Notes under the pieces: generated by a model
What the model was told of the DNA's origin: nothing
The model's database searches: none
Seen by the model: only the letters and a program-made list of their open reading frames with translations
Part shown: one piece after another, positions 34,021 through 51,120 of the stretch
Layout of the letters: every line of letters starts with the position of its first letter
Numbering within the stretch: position 1 is the first letter of the stretch
Position numbers and translations under genes: made by a program
Assembly: GCA_001643675.2 (NCBI GenBank)
Contig: LSRY02000014.1
Span: 186,001-250,000, forward strand
DNA from: Monocercomonoides exilis PA203
Lineage: Eukaryota; Protista; Preaxostyla
Direction of reading: 5' to 3'
DNA length: 64,000 nt

Positions 34021-34921
34021 TAGTATTAACGCATTTGAACATTTGTTGAATTATATTCGAAAATGTTCTCATGGTTAATTATTGTTAATACAGTCCACGA
34101 AACCAGTAATAAAGTGTCTAAATATTTTTGCACTTGTGTGAGAATTTATTATGGGCAGAAAAAGAAGTTATCAACTCAGTCTTAAGTTTTCAAGTTTTCG
34201 CAGAATTGACGAAGGATTGTTATATGAAGTGTTGAATACGGTTCATATTTTTATGCATTATCGAAAGAGTTCTGTCAAAATCATTTTCTCATTTTTTAAT
34301 TTTTAACAAAAGAGGATGAAAAAGATGCACGCGATAAACACATTTTATCATTGAATCAGTTGATAAATAAGATTTAATTCTGTCTCTTTCTCTTCATTTT
34401 TGTGTGTTTTCTTCAAATGCCATTGAAAAAAAAAATAAAATAAAATAAAATAAAAGCGAGTGAATTGAATTGCAATATTTATCTTGCATTTTCATTCATT
34501 CATCAGAATTATTAAAAAATAAAATAAATTAAAATAAATAAATGTGCTCAAATGAAATGCAAAAGCTGTGCTGATGAATGACACGCAGGCAGCTTTTCTA
34601 GCTGCAGCTCTGACAAAGAAGAAGGCAGGAAAAGAAGCAGAGCAAGTCCTGCTTGCTTCGTGTTGCCCAGAAGCCGAAACTCAAGCCCTATCCAAAGCCA
34701 CTCGGCTTATTATTTTGTTTCTCGAGTTGTCGCTGCACACCCAGCACGGCAGGCACAAAAACAGAATCAGCAAAGACGAAAAAAAAAAGGCGAAAAGAAA
34801 GATGCTTCATGGCTTGCCCTGAACAATCGTATTTTATCTTCCCAAAGAAAGTGCATGCCACAGATATGTTTGTCCAACAGCAGGAGACGCAGCTGGCCTG
34901 CAGGCGGCGGAGACAGTCCAT

Positions 34922-36958
34922 TCACAGCGCGTCGTGCAGCGACTGCTCAAAGCAAGCAGATGGCTGGCAATCAGAAGAGGAAGGCATAGAAGCCCTGCCT
35001 GAACGCCTCGTTCGCTGTGCTTTTCGCTCACGCGATCCCAGAAGAGGGAAAAAGGCAAGGGAGTTCGCCTTTTCGCCACATGCACTCTCCAAAAGAAGAT
35101 CCAGCGATGCTGCTGTTGATCTGCGAAAGTCTTTAATCCTGCGACTTCTGGCCCCTTGGGAGGCAAAGAGAGAATCTGCATGTTGGCTGTGCAATTGCCT
35201 GCTGCCGCTTTGCATCCAGCCACGACAGTCGCACAAGTCTTGGCCAGACTCACACAAGCAAGGAGACAATGTTGAAGATGAATGTGGCATCAACCGCTGA
35301 AGCGGTGCCGGAAAGTAGGAAAAGGCATCGAAAAGAGCGAGCTGCATGTGCCTGCTGGGATTATTGGTATTGCTGGTATTGCTGGCATTGCTGGTGTTGC
35401 TGGGAAGCTGAGTCTTGTGGCAGTCGAGCAGAGAGGGCAGCTGCGTGAGGCGTGAGCGCCAACGCCCATGTGCAAGGAATGGAAGCACCAAAACCTCGCT
35501 CTCCTGCATCTCTTGCAGCAGCTCCGCGTTGTGTGCCTGTTCGGCTAGTGCAGCCCTCGCAAGACGCTTGCGCTGCATCCGCTCCTGCCGCGTGCCCCGT
35601 TTGGGGATCTCTCTTTTCGTCTTTTCGTCTTTCTCTATCAAGCACCGCTTGCCGTGCACATGCGCCAGCCCATCTGCGGCAGCTGCTTCCAGAACAGAGG
35701 TGGGCATAATGCTGTCTGAGGAAGAAGGCAGCGCCGAAAAGTTGCAGGAGAGTGGCAATTTATTGTGGAGCGGAGCGCAGAGAGACGACCCAGGAGAGCG
35801 CCGAGAGCCAGAAAAGCAGCGGAAGTGGGGCAATGCGCCAGATGCAGGTGGCGAAGAGCCTTGGCTCCGAATCCCGCATCCAGCACTTTCCCAGTCAACT
35901 CTGATGTGTGTCTTGCTGCCATCTGCTTCGTCTTTTTCCTTCGCTTGACTTTCACAGATTGTATTTTCGCGTTCTGCTGTTTCTTTTCTTTTTCTTTGCT
36001 TTCTTTTAGCCTTCTCTCGCCTTCGTGCTTTTTCCTTCATTAGCCTTTCTTTTTCTTCTTCGTCATATTCTTGGTCTTCGTCTATATTGCTTCCTCCATC
36101 ACTTTTCTCGCAGTGAATTCGTGTTGCAAGGTCAGCTGTCTTCCATTTCTTGTCCACTCCTTCATTTGCGTCGACCTCCTCCTCCAGCAATCTCCTGTTC
36201 AGCTTCAGATGAAGGATACGACGCTTTCCCAGATTTGACATCAGCTGATCGTCTATAGACACGGAAGACAATGAAGATGTGTCTTTCAATATGAAGGCAT
36301 CAGCTTCGGATAATTCTTCTTCCAGTTCGTTGCCTTCTTCACTCTTTTTCATTGATTTCAAAGAATCAGAGTAAATAGACGAAGGATCACAGGGAAAGAA
36401 GGATGTGAAGCTGGAAGAGTGCCAAAAAGGAGTTTTTTGTGTAGCCTTTGGAAAACTCATTTGCAAATAGTTTTCAGAGTACGATGGTGTTTGAGTCCCT
36501 GAAATTTCCGCAGAATTTGAAAAAGCAGGCAAAGCGGAAGATTCTGCTATTATTGAATGATGTAGTTGTTGATAGAATGATAATAAAGATAAATATATTG
36601 AGTTATGCCCGAAACATTGCTCGGAACGAAGGCTTTGACTTGGAATTTCAGGAAGTGGACGTCGAACGTCCAATAATTGAGAAGTAGAAAAGAATGTTTG
36701 CGAAGCATTGCCATTTTGCGAAGAACATTGAAAATGCTCGAGCATATTGTCAAAGAATAAGTATCCTTGCTTTGACGGGTGTTCGTTGCAATCCTTTGCT
36801 TTTATAATCTGAAATGGGAAAGATGAGTTTGAAGCTTTTATTTGTGATTGATCAAAAGAATTCACAATAAAATTTTTGCCTCTCAAAGCGGAAGTGACTA
36901 TTTTCTCCACTTGAGCAGAATTTGAAGGTACGTCGGGGAATGAAAGAAATGAAGCCAT
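34922..36958 (-). CDS. Hypothetical protein, left-arm copy (open frame)
   Basis: 706-aa ORF with first ATG at 36958 (MASFLSF). No recognisable domain. Confidence 0.6.
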   Translation of the reverse strand: MASFLSFPDVPSNSAQVEKIVTSALRGKNFIVNSFDQSQIKASNSSFPFQIIKAKDCNEHPSKQGYLFFDNMLEHFQCSSQNGNASQTFFSTSQLLDVRRPLPEIPSQSLRSEQCFGHNSIYLSLLSFYQQLHHSIIAESSALPAFSNSAEISGTQTPSYSENYLQMSFPKATQKTPFWHSSSFTSFFPCDPSSIYSDSLKSMKKSEEGNELEEELSEADAFILKDTSSLSSVSIDDQLMSNLGKRRILHLKLNRRLLEEEVDANEGVDKKWKTADLATRIHCEKSDGGSNIDEDQEYDEEEKERLMKEKARRREKAKRKQRKRKETAERENTICESQAKEKDEADGSKTHIRVDWESAGCGIRSQGSSPPASGALPHFRCFSGSRRSPGSSLCAPLHNKLPLSCNFSALPSSSDSIMPTSVLEAAAADGLAHVHGKRCLIEKDEKTKREIPKRGTRQERMQRKRLARAALAEQAHNAELLQEMQESEVLVLPFLAHGRWRSRLTQLPSLLDCHKTQLPSNTSNASNTSNTNNPSRHMQLALFDAFSYFPAPLQRLMPHSSSTLSPCLCESGQDLCDCRGWMQSGSRQLHSQHADSLFASQGARSRRIKDFRRSTAASLDLLLESACGEKANSLAFFPLLGSRERKAQRTRRSGRASMPSSSDCQPSACFEQSLHDAL

Positions 36959-37276
36959 TCCTGTTATTGTTTCAAAGATGATTGTAAAAGATTGAACAAG
37001 TTCTATCTTTATTTTAGTATTAAAGTTTTGTTCATAAAACACAATTGCACCAAATAAAAAAAGAAGGGTAAATTAATGTCAACAAATCAAGGAACGATAA
37101 AATTATTCTCAATAAAAAATATACAACAAACAATAATAATGGTTAAATAATTGAATATTCATTTGTTTCCAAAAATATTTGAAAAAGTCAAAATTTCCTA
37201 TAAACTTTAATAACAAAAATAATTAAATGAATAAAACTTCATAAAAAACTATATTTGAATAAAAAAACAAAAATTT

Positions 37277-37349
37277 CGGCCCGAGGCGGGCTCGAACCGC
37301 CGACCTTGTGGTTAACAGCCACACGCTCTGCCGACTGAGCCATCAGGCC
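37277..37349 (-). tRNA. trnN: tRNA-Asn(GTT)
   Basis: 73-nt cloverleaf with anticodon arm TGTGG-CTGTTAA-CCACA, T-loop GGTTCGAGCCC and a downstream T-run terminator. Confidence 0.97.
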
Positions 37350-38149
37350 TATATAAGAAAGGTGTTGCTGCTAAATATCTGAAAACAACTCTATTCCGAA
37401 ATAAAGTTTTTGAAATTTTGAGTTGTGTTTGATGAAATTGTATTGAAATTTATCCAATGTTGACGTTCTTAATGTGCCATTCCACTTTGATACCGTTTTT
37501 TATTATGTGTGCAACATTTTGACATTCGCTACTTTTATTTATTTGTTAAAATAATGTGGATTTTAGGTATAACGTTTCTTTGAGGGTTCACGTGCGATTG
37601 GTTATTCGCATAATAAAAAGGCTTCATATTTTTGACTAAACTAAGCCTTTGTGACTTAGAATGAAATTTTGTTTCAAGTCAGTCAGTGACTTATAGATAA
37701 TTGATCAAAATATTATGATCATTCCGGTACCATAACATAGAGAGAAAAAATATAAAGAAGATTTCTCTTCGCTAATACTGTGATATTAATACAAAATTGG
37801 CATTTTAACATATTCAATTTTAACTTTTTTGTCTTTTTAACTTCTTAAAACAGTTGATTTCTAGCCATTTTGGACAAACAAACAATTTGTTTTTATTTCA
37901 TTGTTTTCATTTCATCCGTTTGATTTTTCATTCTGATTTTTCAAATGCTTTCTTTTTTTAAAACAAACTTCTTTGTTGTGTGACATTAGAAAAAACTGCT
38001 TATTTTGGAATACTTTTTTTATGATATTTCAGATTGTGAAAAAAATTTAACATTTCATTGCTCATATTTATTGAACAACATTCAAAATGAACAACATATG
38101 GAATAATAAAAAAGTTTATAATTTTCAAATTAAATGTTTCATCCATTTT

Positions 38150-38987
38150 TTCCAGAAATGCACTTTCATTAACAATTCAAAATAGCACTTCCATCTTTTT
38201 CGATGTATTCCAGCTGTCTGTTTGCAGTCTTCCATTGCTTGCTTTGGTGCTGGATGTGAGTCAGCGTAAATACTTCTTCAAAATGTACTTGAGCCAACAG
38301 GATGAACACAATGTGGCTGATTGGAAGGTGCTTTACATGTTGTTTGATTCCAGAGCGATTTGATAAGACAGCGAGTTGGCGCTGGATGAAGCGGTGAGCT
38401 AGAAATTTTCGGAGGTATCGTATGTGGAGTTGTACAGGGGAATTGAGGTTGGACTAAAGCTGAGAGTGGATGCTGTGAAATCGCAAGTTGAGAAGAAAAA
38501 AAGTGTCGGATGCAATGTTCTGGATAGTACAACTGCTAATGTGGCAATAAGGGCTGCATATGAATTGGAATTAAGTGGAAGATGCGATATGAATTGCGCT
38601 GCCACTTGAGGATAACGCGTGTGTGCAATTTTGTTTTGAGACAGATTAACAGATGAAGAGGGAGAAAAGGCCAATGCCTTGTCAAGCTTCATCAAGATCT
38701 TCTTTTCTTCTTCTTCTTCTTCATCTTTTGCTTCTCCAAATATTTTCAATCATTATCCATATTATTCTTTTTTCCTCTTCCTTTTCCTCTTCCTCTTCTT
38801 CCTCTTCCTCCTCTTCAAATTCATCATTATCAAATTCTTCTTCTTCATTAAATTCTTCCTCTTCTTCCTCTTCCTCTCTTCTCCCCCTCATTCGCAACTA
38901 ACAACCTTCCGGTCTTCTTTTTACTTCAATAAATCTTTTCATTTCAAACAAAATGACATGCAAATGGAAAAAAATTTTCTTCTTCTT

Positions 38988-39018
<31 letters not shown>

Positions 39019-42000
39019 TTCTTCTTCTTCTTCTTTTCCTTCTTCTTTTTCTACTTCTTTTTCCACATTTTTCAATGAAAACAAGCCAATTTCTTTGAAA
39101 CATCAGCAAATCGACAATCAAAACGGAATGAAAATCGAACTGAAGAATTATGAGCCAAAAAATGAAGAGAAAAAAATTATTTTAAAAATAAGAAGAAAAA
39201 GAAGGAAAAAATGATGAAGAAAGATAAAAAGGAGAAGAAGGAGAAGAAAGAGAAGAGATTTTTAAGAAGAAGAAAAAAAAACAAGAAGAAGAAGAAGAGG
39301 AGGAGGAGGAGGAGGAGGAGAAGGAGGAAGAGGAAGAAGAGGGAGAAGAGGAGGAGGAAGAAGAAGAAGAAGAAGAGGAGGAGAAGGAAGAAAAAGAAGA
39401 AGATGAATTAGCTTGAGCCGCATCATCCACCACCGCATTGACCATTGTTTTTTAATATTCAAACACTTTGTTGATGACTAGACTCGCTGGCTGTTTCGAA
39501 GAAGAAGGAATCTCATCATTGAATGCCGCATCACAAGGGAGAAGGGTTGGGGCGAGGAGAAAAGCTACTGAAACGTCAGAGGAGAGGGATAAGAGGAACC
39601 AGAATACGAAGCTGAGACGCGATTTCACAAAGGAATTGAAAGAGAGAGAGATGAATTTGAAGGACAAGTCTGTTGTTGCTTCGAAGAGATCGGTGCGAGT
39701 GGCTGGGAAGTTGTGGGGGAGGGGGTGATTGTTGAAAGAGGAAGAGGAAGAAGAAGAGGAGGAGAAAGAAGAAGAAGAGGAAGATGAAAGTGTCAATGCC
39801 AACAGAGGAGCATGCTTCGCAAGCAAAGGCAAATGGAGAATGCTGCTCAGTCTTAGCAATTGCTTCATTTGGTTTGGGGGTGCTCTTATCAATTGATGCT
39901 GTGAATTCATCTCAAACACGACACTCACTGGAGACACAGGATGATGCAGAACTTTCATCATATGAAAGAACAAGTGCACAAGAAGCTCAGAAAACAAGCC
40001 ACACTCCATCGATGTTGAAAAGGTGAAAGAAATTTCTTCTCTTTCAGCTTCTTCCCAGAGAAGATCGAGCTGTGACTTGAACTCCACACTCAGTTCCTGT
40101 TTGTTGTATTCGATCTGCATATTCAGGGGGGACGTGCAGTTGCTTCCACACGAAATCTTCACATCCACTTTCTCAGGGACGATGTTGTTGAGCTGCTGAA
40201 GTAGAAGCATCACACTCTCTGCGCTTTCTCGGCTTGCTTCTTCTTTTGATTGCATTTTGTTGAAAGAGAAATTGTTGAGTTGCTCCAAAATGAAGAAGAA
40301 AGCAGATTTGAGCTCCTAAAGACTCGATGTGGAAGGAGGTTCGCTAAGTGGAAGGGGCTGGAGGGAAAAAAAAGGAAAAGGAGGAGGAAGAGTTGAATGA
40401 GATTAATTGTTGAGAGGGTGAAAGGAGAAGAGAAGGGAAGATGAGAAAGAAAAAAAAGGAGATTAAGAAGGAGAAGAAGGAAGAAGAGAAGAGGATTGTG
40501 AAGAAGGAGAGGGAAGGCTTTTTGGTGGATGTGAGAGGACAATTTTGAAGTTGTTATTGTTATTGTTGTTTTTGTTGTTGTTGGACATTTGAGAGGATGA
40601 AGAAGAGGAACTGTCGGATGATGAATGAGATAAAAAAGAGAATAAAGAAGAAGATGAAGAAGAGGAAGAGGAGGAGGAAGATGATGATGAATCAGTTAAT
40701 GATTTCGTTTTTAATACGTTTTTGTAAGTATTATTGTTGTTGTTATTTGCATTCACAATGAAATAAACGTCACTTTCAGATCGATTGTTCCACATTTCTT
40801 CTGAACACATTTCAAACAACATTTCATTTTCTGCTTCAAATATTGTGATGTGTTGGAGACGAGGAAGAATAAATGAAGAAGAAGAAGAGGAGGAGGAGGA
40901 GGGAGATGATGATGATGAAGGAGATAGAGAAGAAGAAGATGATGCTGATGATGTTTTTGAAGCAGCAGCAGCAGAAGAAAAAGAAGATAAAGAAGAAGAA
41001 GAAGAAGAAGAAGAAACATCAGAAAAATCACCAAAAACTGAGCAGTTCTTCTTCAGAACCCAGAGGAAGCTATGCACATATGAAGAGAGATTCAAACACA
41101 CGAGCTAAGATAAGCAAAGAAGAAGGCAAGTATTTTGAGAGCAAATGACTTTGCCTGCCAATAGTGAGGATGTCAAAGAGAAGGGGATATTGCGACAAGC
41201 TGCGCTTGTGTGAGAGGAAAAGAGAGGAAGCTGTTCTTTCTCTGCAGAAGGAGCGGAGGACGATGCTGATTTGGGAGGCGCAGAAGACGAGGGAGGAGAG
41301 AGCATCACTAACAGCGCTGGAGGCAGAGGTGTGGAAGGGGTGGAAGGGGTGGGAGAAAGAAGAGGGTTTCAATAGAGAAGAAGAAGAAGAAGAGGAAGAG
41401 GAAGAGGAAGAAGAAAGAGAAAAGTTATTATTATTGCTGCAACCACTCAAACACAACACGGCATAATCTCTGAGAGTTTTGTGTGATTGATCAAACATCT
41501 GCACAAAGGATGAATGAAAAACTTTTTCATCTTCTGTCTCATTTGCTACAGACAACACGAATGGCAGCAGAGCCACGTAACTTCTTTCAACTTCAGCTAC
41601 ATCTGCGTGTTTCTGTGTGGACAATGCTTCGATTGTCTGAAGAGAAAAAGTGAGGAAAGTGATGGAGGAATCAACAGCTTTTGCTGAATGGACGAAGGAA
41701 TCAGCATCCACATTTAGTGAAGATGTGCTGCTTCATTTGCTCTTCTTTTTCTTCTTCGCATTGGAAGAAGAAGAAGAGAAAAGAGAAGGAGAAGGAGAAG
41801 GAGAAGGAGAATGAGAAGGAGAAAAAGGAGGAGGAGGAGGAGAAAAAGAGGAGGAGGAGGAGAACATGCTGCAGACAAGAAGCCAGGAAGCGGTGTTGTG
41901 GGAGGGCAGAGATACAGTGGAAGAATAACACCGAAGAGGCATTTGGCTCTGGAGTGTTTAAAAATTTTTGTTATGCATGAGATAAGGAATGGTGCAAATA

Positions 42001-42874
42001 TAAAGAAGGCAAAAAAAGAGACTTGTGTGATAAGTTCTGCACGGTTGTCGAAGGCATCGAAGAAAAGCTGAGAAGTACGACTTTGATTACTGCATATGAA
42101 GAGGAAGGAAGGAGGTGATATGTTATGCGAACACACATATCCAGTTTCATCTTCGGAAGCTGTGCTGTGAAGTGGCAGCATCTGTCGTGATGGAGCACAG
42201 ATGATTCTGTGAAGGTGAAGTCAACAACGGAGTGGGAAATTTACGCTACAAGCAGAGCAGAGAAAAAGCGGAAGCAGACAATGTGAAGAAGATTCTGACA
42301 AATTGTTCAGTGATGACATGAGTACATGCGTTCGGGAGTGTGTTTGATGGGGCACCTGATCAGGAGACGCTACTGACGGGTTTGGAGGAGGGAAGACAAA
42401 CAGAAGAATGACGAGTGAAGACAGTCAGCCCATTCTTTTTGTAAGACAACAAATCGTACTTGGAAGAATTGATTGCTCAGAGATGGTGGAAAAATGCTGT
42501 GAAGATGGTGATCAATGCGTCTGCGAAACCTTGTCGGTCATTTCAGAGAGTCTGTGCATTTTCAGAGTTTATTCCGATGAGTGTTCCGAAGGCGTTGAGA
42601 TTTGTAGATGAGAATAAATGTAATGATTCGTTTCTTCTAATTCCTCTTCTTCCTCTTCTTCTCTTTCCTCTTCTTCCTCTTCTTCCTCTTCTTCCTCTTC
42701 CTCCTCTTCCTCCTCTTCTTCCTCTTCTTCCTCTTCTTCCTCTTCTTCCTCTTCTTTTGCATTTTCCTCTTCAGAAATAATGATTGAAGTGGATTGTTCA
42801 ACGAAGATAGTTTTATTGTCATTTCTTTTTATTGTGTTCATTTCATAATTGTTCATATGAAAGAGATAATGCAT
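38150..42874 (-). pseudogene. Cargo inside the hAT: fragmented low-complexity protein-coding sequence (boundaries approximate)
   Basis: Same-strand ORF pieces 42569-42874, 41714-42181, 41070-41711, 40463-41101, 39452-40288 and 38399-38749 with poly-E/S/N tracts. No transposase motifs. Confidence 0.6.
42645..42755. repeat. (CTT/CCT)n microsatellite encoding poly-Glu
   Basis: Direct reading. Similar tracts at 38978-39050, 39280-39400 and 41770-41860. Confidence 0.9.
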
Positions 42875-42976
42875 TTTTATCCCTTGTTTATTGAGATATA
42901 TTTGAAGGTTTCAAAAAATGAAATGTGTCAAAAAAAACTTAGCTGAACAAAATTGCAAAAAATGAATAAAGAAAAA

Positions 42977-45833
42977 CTATATTAAAAGCAATGCATTGAG
43001 AGTGTTGAATGAAAGAGAGTGTCTGTTATCTCCAGTGATTCTTTTCATCCTCGAGAAAATTCGTTCACAGCTTGCTTCGCTGCATGGTGATGAAACAATA
43101 GAAAAACAAATATTCGAATATATGGTGTGATCGAAACTTTTCTTAGATAAGTTAATGTAATAGATTTGAGCATTATCTTCAATAACAGAACTTGGCGATG
43201 CACTCAGCTCACTTTGGTATATCTTCATACATAATTCTTTCAGCCTATGATCTTCTTGAAATAAAACTGAATTTATTAATATTTCAAACCTTCGCTCCAT
43301 CCGATTGTTCCAATCTGACGTGATACAAGAAGATATATTGATGCACATTTCGTCTTCTTTGTCAGTCGAATGTGGAGAGATGATATCAAAAACTTTGCTT
43401 GCAAAAAGCAATTCAACTTCATCCTCTTCCGATTCAATTTCAACACCTAAAGATTCATTCGTATCTGAAAATGAATCAGAGGATCTTGATGATGATGTAA
43501 AAAAAGATGATGAACAAGACGAAGATGATGGTGGAGACGAAGACGATGAAGATGATGAAGATGAAGATGGAGATCTTGTTACTGAATCAAAAATATTAGC
43601 TGTTTGAAAATCAGGATCTTTCATATCTTTTTCTGCCATTAAAATTCCAAGAGGATCTTCTTCTAAATCATCCGAATCGTTTTCATATTCCTCTTTTGTC
43701 TTTGGTTCTTCTGGCTGTGGTGCTTCACCCCTTTCGACAGTATCTGCAATTCGAAGAAGTTTGATGATTTCTGCACAGATGTTATCAAGTTTCTTTTCTT
43801 CATAAATATCATCAAAGCAATTGAGGGACTGAGACATTGTGAAAAAGCTGACCTGTTCATCTCTAACAGATGAATGAAATCTTTCCAAAGCAAGATTGAA
43901 ACTATCATTTGATAAATAGAAATTATGTGTCATAGAATATGGAGAGAAAGTATTAATTGGAAAAGGAGAAGAAATATCACTAAGTTGATTTTTATCCAAA
44001 CTGGAAAAAGAACAATTGGATAAATTTGATTGCAATAAAGATGAAAAAGATGAATTTGTCGAGTTAAAAAAATCTGAGTGTGATGAAATATCCCTTGGTT
44101 GTGAAAACGAGGAAGATCTAATTCGAACGAATCTATTGTCTTCATTAATTTGACCTTGTTTATCAATAGTTTTTTCCGAATTTGAATGCTCACTGATTGA
44201 ATTGAGAAGATGTGCTGTTCCTCCTTTTGAATCCAACTTTTCTATCACGTGTTTTGCTTCAATAAATGAATTTGAAAATTCATTTCTAATGAACCTTTGC
44301 ATTCCAACTGGTGTTAAAACGTGTGCCAGTGATATCATTTCACCTGTTTTTTCCAAATAAAAAATGGTTATGCATCAGAACAAGAATATTAGTAATTGCA
44401 TTTTGCCAATTTGAAGATCTGAATCTTTGGAAGCATTTAATTCCATATAATATTCCAATTGTTTGAAGGATCATGGGGAAAATTTCACCAAGTTTTGTGT
44501 GATCGTTTTCCAAAAAAAGTTGCAGCCTATGAATAGGAAATAACAGTAATTCCATCAATAATGAATTTAACACTTTATCTGTAGAAATCAAAGAATGTTT
44601 TAAAATATCCTCGCTGTTTTTCCTTATAAATGAGCAAATTGGGTACAAACAAAGCCATCTCGTTTGAACAAATGAAGGACATTTTTGCTTTAGCAACTTC
44701 CTGATTGCCGAAGAATGGGCAAATTTTGCAAAAAATGTCAGATCAATCAATATTTGTCTAAGAAAATCAATTTTTGTGAAAGCTTTTGTAATAACTAAAT
44801 TTAAAAGATGGTTGGAACAATAAATAAAAAATGGAGCAACTTTAATTTTTGATAGCAAAGATTCTTCATATTCTTCAAGTGATGTAGTGAAGTTTTCCAG
44901 AGCTTTTTTCTGAGGTTTTAAACCATCTGAACAGAAACACCTAACACTTGCATGAAATGACTCCAATTCTTTTATTATGATCCAGGCTTGTTTTCTATAA
45001 TGACTAGCATTGAAACAAGGAGGATAAACTTTCCAAAAAAAAGTTGTAGTTTCTAGTGACAGAGGAGCAATTGTAACAACTGTGCATTTTTGTCCTCCAA
45101 CTATTCCACCATCCATCATGACACAAATGCATTTTCCGTATAATTCTTTCGCCCTCTTTTCTTTTGCGATTTCACTTTGAGAAATAATTAAGCTGCTTAA
45201 TTTTCAACTTGTTAAATATGGGAATATTTTTGTAGGATGTTTGTCTGGATTTTCTTGAGAAATTTTAATTAAGGCAGTAATGAAATTGTTAAATTCTTTC
45301 GACGATGCAGAAGCTATGGAAATATTGCAATGACTAACAATTTGCGCAAACAGAAATTCCAAATTAGTGCTTGTGTAGTTTACTGAATTGTCAAATTTTT
45401 TGGTTGGATCATCACGATTATTAATAACAGAAGAAAATTGCTTGAAACTTGTGATATTTTGTGTTAATAAAATTGAGCAATGATGATTTTTGATTCCAGC
45501 ATAATTCTTCCTTCCACTGACACCGCAAACTGCATCTCCTCTTGCATTTGGACAAAGGAATTGTTTGTGATATTCCCTAACTGGCGATCCGCATTCGTTT
45601 GATGGGATGTAAGATATCCATAATTTTTCGTTAACAACTTCCAACGTGACTTTTGTTAAAAACTCTTTTGCTTTAATAGGATGTTTGTAGACTTTGAATA
45701 ATTTTTATTGCGAATCAAAATAAAAGATATCCACAAGCAAACCTGCTCCTTTTTCATTTCGTTCCACCAGAGCGAGATTCAAAAAGTTGCATCCGTATTT
45801 TTTTAATTCATCGAGTTTTCTCAAATAACTCAT
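42977..45833 (-). pseudogene. hAT transposase, inactivated
   Basis: VMMDGG, CFCSDG, CSNHLLNL (CxxH), TRW and C-terminal SSPCSEASCERIFS..R.SL dimerisation motif. In-frame TAA (about 45706), TGA (45204-45206) and a +1 frameshift in the T6 run 44347-44352. Confidence 0.9.
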
Positions 45834-46569
45834 TGCCTAATTAAAAAAAAATGTTTTTACAAAAAAATGCAAGATGAAAAACAATAAAACTATTTTCGAA
45901 TCTATTAGTGCATCTTGAAACTCTTTGATTAGTGAATCTTTGTTTAAAATGATGGGCCCTGACATGACTTTTTTGACTGAGACACAAAAAGATCAACAAG
46001 TCACTGACTTGGAAATTCCCTAATTGTTGATCTGGTCATTTCCCATCATTAACAAAATATTCAAATTGATTTTTTTTTTGAAGTTATGATTTGAATATTT
46101 GAAATTCATGAAAATGATATGAGTGAATAAATTTCCTAACTGAATGAAAAATATTCCAAATTGAAAAATATTGTTTTGACTTAAAAAAATGAAAAAGTCA
46201 GTCAAAATCGTAATTTTTATCATTGAAAGTCAGTAAGTCACAAAGGCTTAGACTAAACTTTCATCATCACTCTTTAATATTGAATATAAGTTTTCATTAT
46301 CAATTTGCTTTTTTTTTTTTTTTTTTTTTTTTTTTTTGGTTTTCGTTGAAAAAAAAAATATAATTATCCCTTCATGTTTATTTATCCTTTTTTAGGAAAA
46401 TTATTTTTACAATTATAAAAAGATATTTTTAACATGCTTTATTGGAACGTAAGGATTATTTGAATTAATAGGGTTTATAATTGCTCCATTCAAGTATTTA
46501 AATGAAAGTTGAAAAAATAGTCCAATTATGGTTTTATTTTGAATTATGAAGTGTTCAAATTTTAATAGT

Positions 46570-46960
46570 TATGTCAAAAAAAATACCGGACATCGCAAAA
46601 AACACCGGACAAGATCGATATCTCAATAACAGCAAGAAGAAAAATTCTGTTAAATTTCCTCAAAATATATCTCATCAATACAAACTCACATGACATACGA
46701 GACTTTCAAAATAGCTTCATTTGTGCTCAGAAAATATTATTATAAAATTCTCGTAGAAACTCAAAATCCAATTTCTCCGAATTTTTAAAAATAATTTTTT
46801 CTGAGCACAAATATAGTTGTTTTGAAAGTACCATGTATCAATTGAGTTTGTATTGATGAGATATATTTTGAGGAAATTTAACAGAATTTTTCTTCTTGCT
46901 GTTATTGAGATATCGATCTTGTCCGGTGTTTTTTGCGATGTCCGGTATTTTTTTTGACAT
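46570..46960. repeat. Palindromic (fold-back MITE-like) core of the giant inverted repeat
   Basis: Perfect symmetry outside 46689-46842 and imperfect symmetry inside (e.g. TTTGTGCTCAGAAAA / TTTTCTGAGCACAAA). Tandem ACCGGACA motifs in the arms. Outer limits are a guess. Confidence 0.65.
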
Positions 46961-47553
46961 AACTATTAAAATTTGAACACTTCATAATTCAAAATAAAAC
47001 CATAATTGGACTATTTTTTCAACTTTCATTTAAATACTTGAATGGAGCAATTATAAACCCTATTAATTCAAATAATCCTTACGTTCCAATAAAGCATGTT
47101 AAAAATATCTTTTTATAATTGTAAAAATAATTTTCCTAAAAAAGGATAAATAAACATGAAGGGATAATTATATTTTTTCAACGAAAACCATAAAAAAAAA
47201 AAAAAAAAAAAGCAAATTGATAATGAAAACTTATATTCAATATTAAAGAGTGATGATGAAAGTTTAGTCAAAAATATGAAGCCTTTTTATTATGCGAATA
47301 ACCAATCGCACGTGAACCCTCAAAGAAACGTTATACCTAAAATCCACATTATTTTAACAAATAAATAAAAGTAGCGAATGTCAAAATGTTGCACACATAA
47401 TAAAAAACGGTATCAAAGTGGAATGGCACATTAAGAACGTCAACATTGGATAAATTTCAATACAATTTCATCAAACACAACTCAAAATTTCAAAAACTTT
47501 ATTTCGGAATAGAGTTGTTTTCAGATATTTAGCAGCAACACCTTTCTTATATA

Positions 47554-47626
47554 GGCCTGATGGCTCAGTCGGCAGAGCGTGTGGCTGTTAACCACAAGGT
47601 CGGCGGTTCGAGCCCGCCTCGGGCCG
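47554..47626 (+). tRNA. trnN: tRNA-Asn(GTT), identical inverted copy
   Basis: Exact reverse complement of 37277-37349. Confidence 0.97.
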
Positions 47627-47944
47627 AAATTTTTGTTTTTTTATTCAAATATAGTTTTTTATGAAGTTTTATTCATTTAATTATTTTTGTTATTAAAGTT
47701 TATAGGAAATTTTGACTTTTTCAAATATTTTTGGAAACAAATGAATATTCAATTATTTAACCATTATTATTGTTTGTTGTATATTTTTTATTGAGAATAA
47801 TTTTATCGTTCCTTGATTTGTTGACATTAATTTACCCTTCTTTTTTTATTTGGTGCAATTGTGTTTTATGAACAAAACTTTAATACTAAAATAAAGATAG
47901 AACTTGTTCAATCTTTTACAATCATCTTTGAAACAATAACAGGA

Positions 47945-49983
47945 ATGGCTTCATTTCTTTCATTCCCCGACGTACCTTCAAATTCTGCTCAAGTGGAGAA
48001 AATAGTCACTTCCGCTTTGAGAGGCAAAAATTTTATTGTGAATTCTTTTGATCAATCACAAATAAAAGCTTCAAACTCATCTTTCCCATTTCAGATTATA
48101 AAAGCAAAGGATTGCAACGAACACCCGTCAAAGCAAGGATACTTATTCTTTGACAATATGCTCGAGCATTTTCAATGTTCTTCGCAAAATGGCAATGCTT
48201 CGCAAACATTCTTTTCTACTTCTCAATTATTGGACGTTCGACGTCCACTTCCTGAAATTCCAAGTCAAAGCCTTCGTTCCGAGCAATGTTTCGGGCATAA
48301 CTCAATATATTTATCTTTATTATCATTCTATCAACAACTACATCATTCAATAATAGCAGAATCTTCCGCTTTGCCTGCTTTTTCAAATTCTGCGGAAATT
48401 TCAGGGACTCAAACACCATCGTACTCTGAAAACTATTTGCAAATGAGTTTTCCAAAGGCTACACAAAAAACTCCTTTTTGGCACTCTTCCAGCTTCACAT
48501 CCTTCTTTCCCTGTGATCCTTCGTCTATTTACTCTGATTCTTTGAAATCAATGAAAAAGAGTGAAGAAGGCAACGAACTGGAAGAAGAATTATCCGAAGC
48601 TGATGCCTTCATATTGAAAGACACATCTTCATTGTCTTCCGTGTCTATAGACGATCAGCTGATGTCAAATCTGGGAAAGCGTCGTATCCTTCATCTGAAG
48701 CTGAACAGGAGATTGCTGGAGGAGGAGGTCGACGCAAATGAAGGAGTGGACAAGAAATGGAAGACAGCTGACCTTGCAACACGAATTCACTGCGAGAAAA
48801 GTGATGGAGGAAGCAATATAGACGAAGACCAAGAATATGACGAAGAAGAAAAAGAAAAGGCTAATGAAGGAAAAAGCACGAAGGCGAGAGAAGGCTAAAA
48901 GAAAGCAAAGAAAAAGAAAAGAAACAGCAGAACGCGAAAATACAATCTGTGAAAGTCAAGCGAAGGAAAAAGACGAAGCAGATGGCAGCAAGACACACAT
49001 CAGAGTTGACTGGGAAAGTGCTGGATGCGGGATTCGGAGCCAAGGCTCTTCGCCACCTGCATCTGGCGCATTGCCCCACTTCCGCTGCTTTTCTGGCTCT
49101 CGGCGCTCTCCTGGGTCGTCTCTCTGCGCTCCGCTCCACAATAAATTGCCACTCTCCTGCAACTTTTCGGCGCTGCCTTCTTCCTCAGACAGCATTATGC
49201 CCACCTCTGTTCTGGAAGCAGCTGCCGCAGATGGGCTGGCGCATGTGCACGGCAAGCGGTGCTTGATAGAGAAAGACGAAAAGACGAAAAGAGAGATCCC
49301 CAAACGGGGCACGCGGCAGGAGCGGATGCAGCGCAAGCGTCTTGCGAGGGCTGCACTAGCCGAACAGGCACACAACGCGGAGCTGCTGCAAGAGATGCAG
49401 GAGAGCGAGGTTTTGGTGCTTCCATTCCTTGCACATGGGCGTTGGCGCTCACGCCTCACGCAGCTGCCCTCTCTGCTCGACTGCCACAAGACTCAGCTTC
49501 CCAGCAACACCAGCAATGCCAGCAATACCAGCAATACCAATAATCCCAGCAGGCACATGCAGCTCGCTCTTTTCGATGCCTTTTCCTACTTTCCGGCACC
49601 GCTTCAGCGGTTGATGCCACATTCATCTTCAACATTGTCTCCTTGCTTGTGTGAGTCTGGCCAAGACTTGTGCGACTGTCGTGGCTGGATGCAAAGCGGC
49701 AGCAGGCAATTGCACAGCCAACATGCAGATTCTCTCTTTGCCTCCCAAGGGGCCAGAAGTCGCAGGATTAAAGACTTTCGCAGATCAACAGCAGCATCGC
49801 TGGATCTTCTTTTGGAGAGTGCATGTGGCGAAAAGGCGAACTCCCTTGCCTTTTTCCCTCTTCTGGGATCGCGTGAGCGAAAAAGCACAGCGAACGAGGC
49901 GTTCAGGCAGGGCTTCTATGCCTTCCTCTTCTGATTGCCAGCCATCTGCTTGCTTTGAGCAGTCGCTGCACGACGCGCTGTGA
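47945..49983 (+). CDS. Hypothetical protein, right-arm copy with two +1 homopolymer frameshifts
   Basis: Same protein as 34922-36958 but split at about 48850 and 49880 by one extra A each. Confidence 0.55.
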
Positions 49984-51120
49984 ATGGACTGTCTCCGCCG
50001 CCTGCAGGCCAGCTGCGTCTCCTGCTGTTGGACAAACATATCTGTGGCATGCACTTTCTTTGGGAAGATAAAATACGATTGTTCAGGGCAAGCCATGAAG
50101 CATCTTTCTTTTCGCCTTTTTTTTTTCGTCTTTGCTGATTCTGTTTTTGTGCCTGCCGTGCTGGGTGTGCAGCGACAACTCGAGAAACAAAATAATAAGC
50201 CGAGTGGCTTTGGATAGGGCTTGAGTTTCGGCTTCTGGGCAACACGAAGCAAGCAGGACTTGCTCTGCTTCTTTTCCTGCCTTCTTCTTTGTCAGAGCTG
50301 CAGCTAGAAAAGCTGCCTGCGTGTCATTCATCAGCACAGCTTTTGCATTTCATTTGAGCACATTTATTTATTTTAATTTATTTTATTTTTTAATAATTCT
50401 GATGAATGAATGAAAATGCAAGATAAATATTGCAATTCAATTCACTCGCTTTTATTTTATTTTATTTTATTTTTTTTTTCAATGGCATTTGAAGAAAACA
50501 CACAAAACCACTTTGCACATGCGTGTACGTGCGTGCTTTGCAAAAAACAGAAAAATGATCGAACAGAGGAGTAATAAAAAACTTCAGGCAACTTCAATTG
50601 GCTTTGAATTCCTTTGTGCCTCTGCCTCCACACATCTAACTCTGCACCTCGCTGCTTCACGCATAGAATTTTTTGTTCTGCATTCTGGTTAGGCGCAAAA
50701 GAAAGAAAGAAAGAAAGAAAAAGTGTTTTATTCCTCGAGAACTGGCTGTTTCAATCAAAATCTGTTTTTGTGCAAATAGCACAATTGTCTGTCAGATTAT
50801 TTGCAATCCACGACAATGGGTATGAATTTGTGTTTTGGGTATTTTATTATTTGCGATTGGATTATCTCGGATTTCCTTTTTCTTTCTTTTTTTCCTTCAT
50901 TTTTCCCTCTCCATCATTCAGAATCTTTTCGATTTACGCCTTCGACTCATTTTATCTGCGAATTCAAGCAGGCACCAGATTTGCAGAAAAACGTGAGAGA
51001 TGAAAGAGAAGTGTTTGTGCTTTTTTTCTATTTTTTGTCTGGTGCGCGAAGGATGAAATTCTGCTTCTTTTCCTTTTGCTATTTTTTTGTGTGTTTGTTT
51101 GTTTGCTATTCAATTCACAG

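Follow-up and report, generated by a model that had tools for sequence, protein, structure and literature searches.

Does the DNA behind the transposase gene of a large hAT transposon in Monocercomonoides exilis PA203 belong to that transposon, and how could a copy with a broken transposase gene come to occupy one arm of a palindrome whose twin arm is empty? Both questions are raised by E1, an 8.6-kb hAT element in a 64,000-nucleotide stretch of contig LSRY02000014.1 (assembly GCA_001643675.2, positions 186,001 to 250,000), referred to here as the window. Coordinates are window positions unless another locus is named, and the record position on LSRY02000014.1 is the window position plus 186000. 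A preliminary description of this DNA, made from the letters alone, had proposed a cargo-carrying hAT transposon of a "Pack-type" or giant family that inserted after a local duplication. We describe E1 as one copy of a low-copy M. exilis family. We consider it quite probable that this family carries an ancestral cargo that travels with it, that one open reading frame (ORF) of the cargo, ORF D, is a working gene, and that E1 was moved recently in trans.

Limits and hAT identity of E1

E1 lies in the left arm of a palindrome that spans 34398-50507, with arms of ~3.6-3.7 kb on either side of a 12-nt centre at 46760-46771. The element is flanked by a perfect 8-bp target-site duplication, GACTAAAC, read directly at 37634-37641 on the left and, in identical form, at 46251-46258 on the right. 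Its terminal inverted repeats (TIRs) are a perfect 17 bp: the cargo-side (3') one, on the plus strand at 37642-37658, reads TAAGCCTTTGTGACTTA, and the transposase-side (5') one, on the minus strand at 46234-46250, is its exact reverse complement. A search with this repeat allowing up to three mismatches gave two matches in the 64-kb window, which are the two ends themselves (0.16 expected by chance), and no further copy of E1 was found in the window. The twin arm holds the unoccupied target site as a single copy at 47262-47269 (GTTTAGTC, the reverse complement) with no footprint. Once E1 and one duplication are removed, the left arm (34398-37641 plus 46259-46759) aligns unbroken to the reverse complement of the right arm (50507-46772) over 3,747 columns at 99.15% identity. 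Because the element-free left arm aligns in one piece to the empty twin arm, the limits of E1 are exact, and they are confirmed as precisely the DNA that the twin arm lacks. The 17-bp TIRs, the 8-bp duplication and the single pre-insertion site that the preliminary description had reported were all borne out by direct reading and by the arm alignment. In a search of sequencing runs, four DNA runs from one study held 51-68% of the sampled words of E1; these probably represent the source sample and are not independent. A small ORF at the end of E1, looked up by exact match to reach short-read contigs bearing the junction, had nothing on record.

The transposase gene of E1 is read from the minus strand in three pieces (45704-45207, 45203-44343 and 44374-42980). 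The last of these matches the Pfam domain Dimer_Tnp_hAT (PF05699) with E = 6.5e-5 and 23.1 bits against a cut-off of 21.4. In a second copy of the family, E2 (described below), the transposase occupies an open frame of 908 amino acids (aa), on which the same domain scores 20.0 bits, just below the cut-off; the same region aligns to residues 444-504 of the Hermes transposase. The E2 frame matches Hermes (PDB 6DWW, 2BW3 and 4D1Q) with E = 8e-5, both in this C-terminal block and in a block where query residues 293-369 correspond to Hermes 187-263 (CSxHLLN...RW).

A single distant full-length relative of the transposase was found, an 878-aa protein with 31% identity. The motifs MMDGG, CSDG, CSNHLLNLV, TRW and CSEASCER are invariant between it and E2, and MMDGG, CSDG and CSEASCER among them are candidates for the catalytic DDE (Asp-Asp-Glu) residues, the two D residues being placed by motif. 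Pfam gave no match to a BED-type zinc finger in the E1 and E2 transposase frames; a Cys/His pattern of the E2 frame (C51, C60, H74 and C76) is invariant in the 878-aa relative. The motif TGACTT/AAGTCA is concentrated at the ends of the element, with 10 of its 14 occurrences in E1 lying within the terminal 300 bp at either end. The same pattern is present in E2 and in a sister family. The 3' subterminal region (37659-38200, minus strand), which is rich in this motif, is ~90% identical to its counterpart in E2. Perfect 8-bp duplications flank all four insertions that we delimited, namely E1 (GACTAAAC), E2 (ATAATGTT) and two sister elements (CTGGTCAC and GTTTAGGG). Because the domain and Hermes matches, the motifs, the end-concentrated TGACTT and the 8-bp duplications occur together, and with short TIRs, E1 is identified as a hAT element, and on this point the preliminary description was right.

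The 878-aa relative is encoded, intact and with all core motifs, on contigs of only 3.4-3.6 kb in three ENA metagenome assemblies (L008, L009 and L010, from ERZ27234820, ERZ28573572 and ERZ1667814). We sought terminal repeats on the contigs of this relative (P0005) and obtained no convincing pair. Neither a metagenome scan with the transposase alignment nor a viral scan with the transposase retrieved a relative.

The transposase gene appears to consist of two exons on the minus strand. Exon 2 (42977-45691) comprises ~905 codons, includes the dimerisation domain and is broken in E1. A putative exon 1 (45743-45833) starts with an ATG (MSYLRKLDEL) and is open in both E1 and E2, and its protein sequence is conserved in the sister family. 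Between the two lies a predicted 51-nt GT-AG intron (45692-45742) that encloses the sole in-frame TAA separating the exons; donor, acceptor and TAA are the same in E1 and E2. We infer that removal of this intron would join exon 1 to the main frame and give a transposase of ~934 codons. Aligned with E2, exon 2 of E1 carries a nonsense codon at 45206-45204, where a substitution has changed AGA to TGA, and a frameshift at 44352-44347, where E1 has six A residues and E2 five. Because of the nonsense codon, E1 has no full-length transposase. Between the two copies, transposase substitutions fall 44/41/102 by codon position, with a ratio of nonsynonymous to synonymous substitution rates (dN/dS) of 0.27; wrong-frame controls gave ~1.

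A cargo shared by two copies

Behind the transposase gene, the span 38150-42874 (~4.8 kb, ~55% of E1) is non-transposase DNA, and whether it belongs to the element was decided by the second copy. The paralogue of ORF D, MONOS_5516 (83% identity), led to a locus on contig LSRY02000015.1, here L006, that holds E2. This copy occupies L006 5014-13448 (8,435 bp) and has 17-bp ends identical to those of E1, the cargo-side end lying at L006 13432-13448, within a different perfect duplication, ATAATGTT. The 5' end and transposase of the two copies (46253-42774 and L006 5011-8486) are 92.9% identical, a core of the cargo (41810-39394 and L006 8483-10867) is 87-89% identical, and the 3' end (38200-37642 and L006 12880-13448, ~560 bp, of which L006 12880-13431 is the subterminal part) is ~90% identical. 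Because E1 and E2 share this cargo inside identical ends and different duplications, it belongs to the element. The comparison indicates that the cargo is an inherited part of the family, which would have been present in the common ancestor of E1 and E2 and has moved with the element since; it would not be a later nested insert. The preliminary description had inferred a family that moves extra DNA as a unit and had allowed that the cargo might never occur within these TIRs elsewhere. E2 answers both points, with a 2.4-kb core in identical ends and its own 8-bp duplication.

The general layout of the family is a 17-bp end, the two-exon transposase gene (~934 codons), a passenger of ~4.8 kb, a 0.5-kb subterminal region and the second 17-bp end, 8.4-8.6 kb in all. 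The E2 transposase lies in an open 908-codon frame (L006 5557-8280). The E2 gene as a whole, this frame together with the short exon 1 (L006 5428-8283, ~872.9-875.8 kb of LSRY02000015.1), has no NCBI gene model; it is a candidate source of active transposase.

Within the passenger of E1, three segments can be told apart. A variable segment (38201-39393) consists of low-complexity runs and unique DNA without a Pfam match, and it shares only low-complexity matches with the equivalent 2.0 kb of E2 (L006 10868-12879). A segment found in E1 alone (41811-42773, analysed outside a masked 55 nt at 42632-42686) has GAA/GAG and TCC runs at its borders and is absent from E2, where L006 8486 joins 8483. 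Between them lies the shared core (39394-41810, minus strand), which has the appearance of the remains of one long frame in the orientation of the transposase. It comprises pieces B (41732-41073) and C (41104-40466), a low-complexity linker, and ORF D (39452-40255, minus strand; P0003), an annotated 267-aa orphan that is intact in E1 and has MONOS_5516 as its twin in E2.

The claim that more than half of the element is gene-like, non-transposase DNA co-oriented with the transposase also stood up. The sense-strand frames of the shared core exceeded all of 1000 local shuffles (1000/1000, with composition preserved within 60-nt blocks) in E1 and in E2, and the opposite strand was unremarkable. 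In E2 the cargo pieces from L006 8432 to 10633 form one frame, interrupted by an inverted stretch of 170 bp and two stops. The inverted stretch (L006 8788-8958, corresponding to 41505-41341) breaks the E2 frame at a place where E1 is open. In E1 the frame changes from B to C through a 1-nt insertion at 41089, and stops occur in the linker. Indels between the two copies were multiples of three in 6 of 8 cases in the shared core and in 0 of 9 in the non-coding ends.

Both copies retain an intact ORF D (211-267 aa), whose first 165 codons, free of low complexity, carry substitutions distributed 16/14/28 by codon position (dN/dS 0.33). These 58 substitutions produce 27 amino-acid changes, where the same number placed at random under the observed spectrum would be expected to produce 39.3 +/- 3.2 (P = 0.0004); the wrong-frame controls gave P = 0.72 and 0.55. 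On these coding signals, our reading is that the cargo was once one long frame in transposase orientation which is now mostly decaying, and that D appears to be kept by purifying selection of about the same strength as that on the transposase. ORF D would then be a working gene carried by the element and most likely an old acquisition of coding DNA.

Searches for the origin of the cargo returned little. No cargo frame of E1, E2 or the sister family matched Pfam. HMMER with piece B against 1.84 billion representative proteins gave a low-complexity match only. Queries of the ESM Atlas with D and with B/C yielded nothing usable, Rfam and tRNA scans of 37634-42631 found nothing, and viral scans with D as query recovered no relative. 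The word "captured" used in the preliminary description is not established, since these searches brought up no domain, no relative and no host parent gene. "Pack-type", in its strict sense, was not borne out: the ends enclose a transposase gene, broken in E1 and an open frame in E2, and a family that encodes its transposase is not Pack-type.

Large cargo also occurs in a related family. A homologue search with the C-terminal transposase piece was swamped by low-complexity words, and its lone match was MONOS_12692c2 (48% identity), which is encoded twice on LSRY02000015.1. The two sister loci (L001 7532-16804 and L002 7529-16808) hold a 9.28-kb unit that is 99.84% identical between them, with ends that begin TAAGCCTGGGTGAC and different 8-bp duplications, CTGGTCAC and GTTTAGGG. 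The sister transposase is homologous to that of E1 and E2 along its length and is spread over several frames, through either introns or decay. Behind it lie ~5.9 kb that include a 615-codon frame rich in E and K (L001 13325-15169). Comparison of this cargo with that of E1 and E2 by tblastx and blastp showed no similarity. A large cargo behind the transposase gene is, judging from these two families, a habit of this M. exilis hAT clade, with contents that differ by family. Because the cargo differs between families, separate acquisitions are favoured over a conserved second gene.

The palindrome and the movement of E1

The order of events at the locus can be read from the palindrome. Its arms differ by 19 substitutions, 18 of which fall at 46689-46754 and one at 46336 beside a poly-T run. 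Outside the innermost ~70 nt on each side of the centre, that one substitution is joined by four differences of length: two single T residues, one poly-T length and one 4-nt A run. Arms so alike would be either very young or kept identical. Excision of a hAT element normally leaves a footprint. Because the twin arm holds an untouched single target site, E1 would have inserted after the duplication, the order that the preliminary description had proposed; the exact empty site is most simply explained by insertion after a very young palindromic duplication.

The divergence between E1 and E2 is 7-11%. Since the two copies differ by this much, the nonsense codon of E1 very probably predates its insertion, which implies mobilisation in trans by an intact member of the family. 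Most likely, we infer, E1 moved very recently by this route: itself unable to make transposase, it would have been mobilised into the already duplicated palindrome by a relative such as E2, which has identical ends. That the element made the palindrome axis itself, by alternative transposition, was considered and rejected: the axis (46760-46771) is 500 bp from the end of E1 and the twin target site is untouched.

The arms also carry a gene for a 678-aa protein, and the left-arm ORF corresponds to an annotated M. exilis protein. In the right-arm copy two extra T residues (48858 and 49884; the corresponding left-arm positions are 36045 and 35020) break the frame. Two short-read contigs, L004 (ERR12411804) and L005 (ERR12411573), match the left-arm version at 100%, without either extra T. 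Nanopore error may account for the extra T residues, or the only intact copy may be the left one. E1 (insertion point 37641/37642) lies 684 bp upstream of the ATG of the left-arm gene (36958), between that gene and the palindrome centre, and this position could affect the expression of the left-arm copy only.

Competing explanations and relation to known elements

Several observations weigh against the account given above. The family is represented by the two copies E1 and E2, so all selection results are one pairwise comparison. Upstream of D the cargo is broken in both copies, by the frameshift and stops in E1 and by the inversion and two stops in E2. Constraint on pieces B/C is weak and not significant (16/16/23 by codon position, dN/dS 0.51, P = 0.08), and piece B5 shows no signal (13/9/11, dN/dS 0.70). 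Total cargo divergence (11.6%) is close to the third-position divergence of the transposase (11.2%). Many of the indels in the cargo fall within triplet repeats, in which multiples of three arise from slippage alone. ORF D itself had no relative other than its E2 twin among candidate proteins of 147-467 aa, its AlphaFold2 model is of low confidence (mean predicted local distance difference test score, pLDDT, of 45), and no RNA run was among the matches of the sequencing-run search with element words. The unrelated cargo of the sister family makes a conserved second gene of the whole clade appear unlikely. Finally, the homopolymer frameshift in the E1 transposase may be a nanopore or assembly error, and the palindrome with its adjacent empty site is read from a nanopore assembly.

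Some of these observations would be expected if the cargo were a pure passenger, a piece of a host gene transduplicated in the Pack sense, acquired a single time through gap repair or template switching, devoid of any role and now decaying, with the signal in D due to chance or a remnant. The broken upstream cargo and its near-neutral divergence fit this explanation, as do the variable and copy-specific segments, which would reflect turnover of the cargo bay, and the different cargo of the sister family. We regard it as possible but doubtful: no host parent gene was found, either with B among the 1.84 billion representatives or with D among proteins of 147-467 aa, and D is intact in both copies with a clear deficit of amino-acid changes (P = 0.0004). 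The same conservation of D could mean instead that the element is a two-gene transposon in which D, ancestrally a frame of ~750 codons, is an accessory protein required or useful for transposing or for regulating this, and maintained by element-level selection, on the model of the second ORFs of PIF/Harbinger or CACTA elements. ORF D is co-oriented with the transposase gene at a fixed position behind it, and it has been kept through ~10% divergence of two transposing lineages with a dN/dS (0.33) near that of the transposase (0.27). Yet the sister family has no D homologue, a second gene would hardly fit on the contigs of 3.4-3.6 kb that carry the 878-aa relative, the cargo upstream of D is disrupted in E2, the very copy with an intact transposase, and D has no recognisable domain. 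This explanation therefore seems unlikely to us. If it were true, this would be, to our knowledge, the first case of a functional second gene in a hAT lineage, and the lineage would be one still active today, as the insertion of E1 into a young palindrome arm would show.

Two further explanations concern the locus and the structure of the element. The palindrome might be an assembly artefact in which a filled and an empty version of the locus, from different haplotypes or cell lineages, were wrongly joined. The assembly is from nanopore reads, outside the centre the arms differ only at homopolymers, and the flanking gene is matched by the two short-read contigs, which come from other runs, in its left-arm version only. 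We judge such an artefact improbable: a fold-back read would make the arms identical, with the element in both or in neither, the palindrome centre has an imperfect 150-bp core of its own, and the locus is internal to a contig of 1.86 Mb. In either case the element, its limits and the exact empty site are unaffected, and the insertion would still be recent. It is very improbable, in our estimate, that the cargo is one or several separate transposons nested in a hAT of normal size. Low-complexity runs border both the segment found in E1 alone (41811-42773) and the variable segment (38201-39393), and these two may be later additions, but the 2.4-kb core is at the same place in E1 and E2 and shows neither inverted ends nor duplications of its own apart from low-complexity repeats, and the cargo includes no transposon-type domain and no RNA gene.

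The preferred account, a hAT family with an ancestral cargo and a recently mobilised E1, can be set beside known systems. Canonical hAT elements are ~3-5 kb long and have a single gene. Like Hermes (PDB 2BW3/6DWW), Ac, hobo and Tol2, the M. exilis family has an 8-bp duplication, short TIRs and subterminal repeats, and a transposase with a CxxH...RW block and a C-terminal dimerisation region. Unlike them, E1 is 8.6 kb long and 55% non-transposase, and its transposase is long (~934 aa) with low-complexity inserts. In PIF/Harbinger, CACTA and MuDR elements a second ORF is conserved across each superfamily. The M. exilis family resembles these in keeping a second ORF beside the transposase gene and differs in that this ORF is restricted to one family, the sister family lacking it.

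The M. exilis genome paper puts DNA transposons at 4.52% of the assembly and makes no mention of hAT elements or palindromes (PMC8767320). Gene-carrying hATs as a kind are not new. In Dothideomycete fungi (Pseudocercospora fijiensis and relatives), complete hAT elements with a captured copy of histone H3 are described, and there, as here, a transposase-bearing element and extra gene-like sequence move as one unit (PMC6710886). In the fungal case the histone H3 parent gene is known and its copies have been rendered inactive through repeat-induced point mutation (PMC6710886); the M. exilis family differs in having no parent found, a very low copy number, a larger cargo (4.8 kb) and one ORF under apparent purifying selection. 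Plant Pack-TYPE transposons, including hAT-based ones, are by definition non-autonomous and enclose recognisable fragments of host genes (PMC8903248). The likeness is that TIRs and duplications enclose non-transposase coding-like DNA that is mobilised with the ends (PMC8903248); the M. exilis family differs in that it encodes a transposase, with an intact frame in E2, and in that its cargo has no recognisable host source.

What is worth noting, then, is the carriage of an orphan ORF that appears to be under purifying selection and the very recent mobility of an 8.6-kb copy with a defective transposase. E1 offers a clean and datable case in which a large hAT element of the amitochondriate protist M. 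exilis has moved very recently. Here, transposase-encoding hATs can evidently carry several kb of coding-like DNA through many rounds of transposition, and at least one carried ORF seems to have been kept by selection. The mobility of a copy with a dead transposase gene would imply a live source of transposase in the genome. The family is thus a candidate tool for oxymonad genetics and a case on which the survival of transposon-borne genes can be tested.

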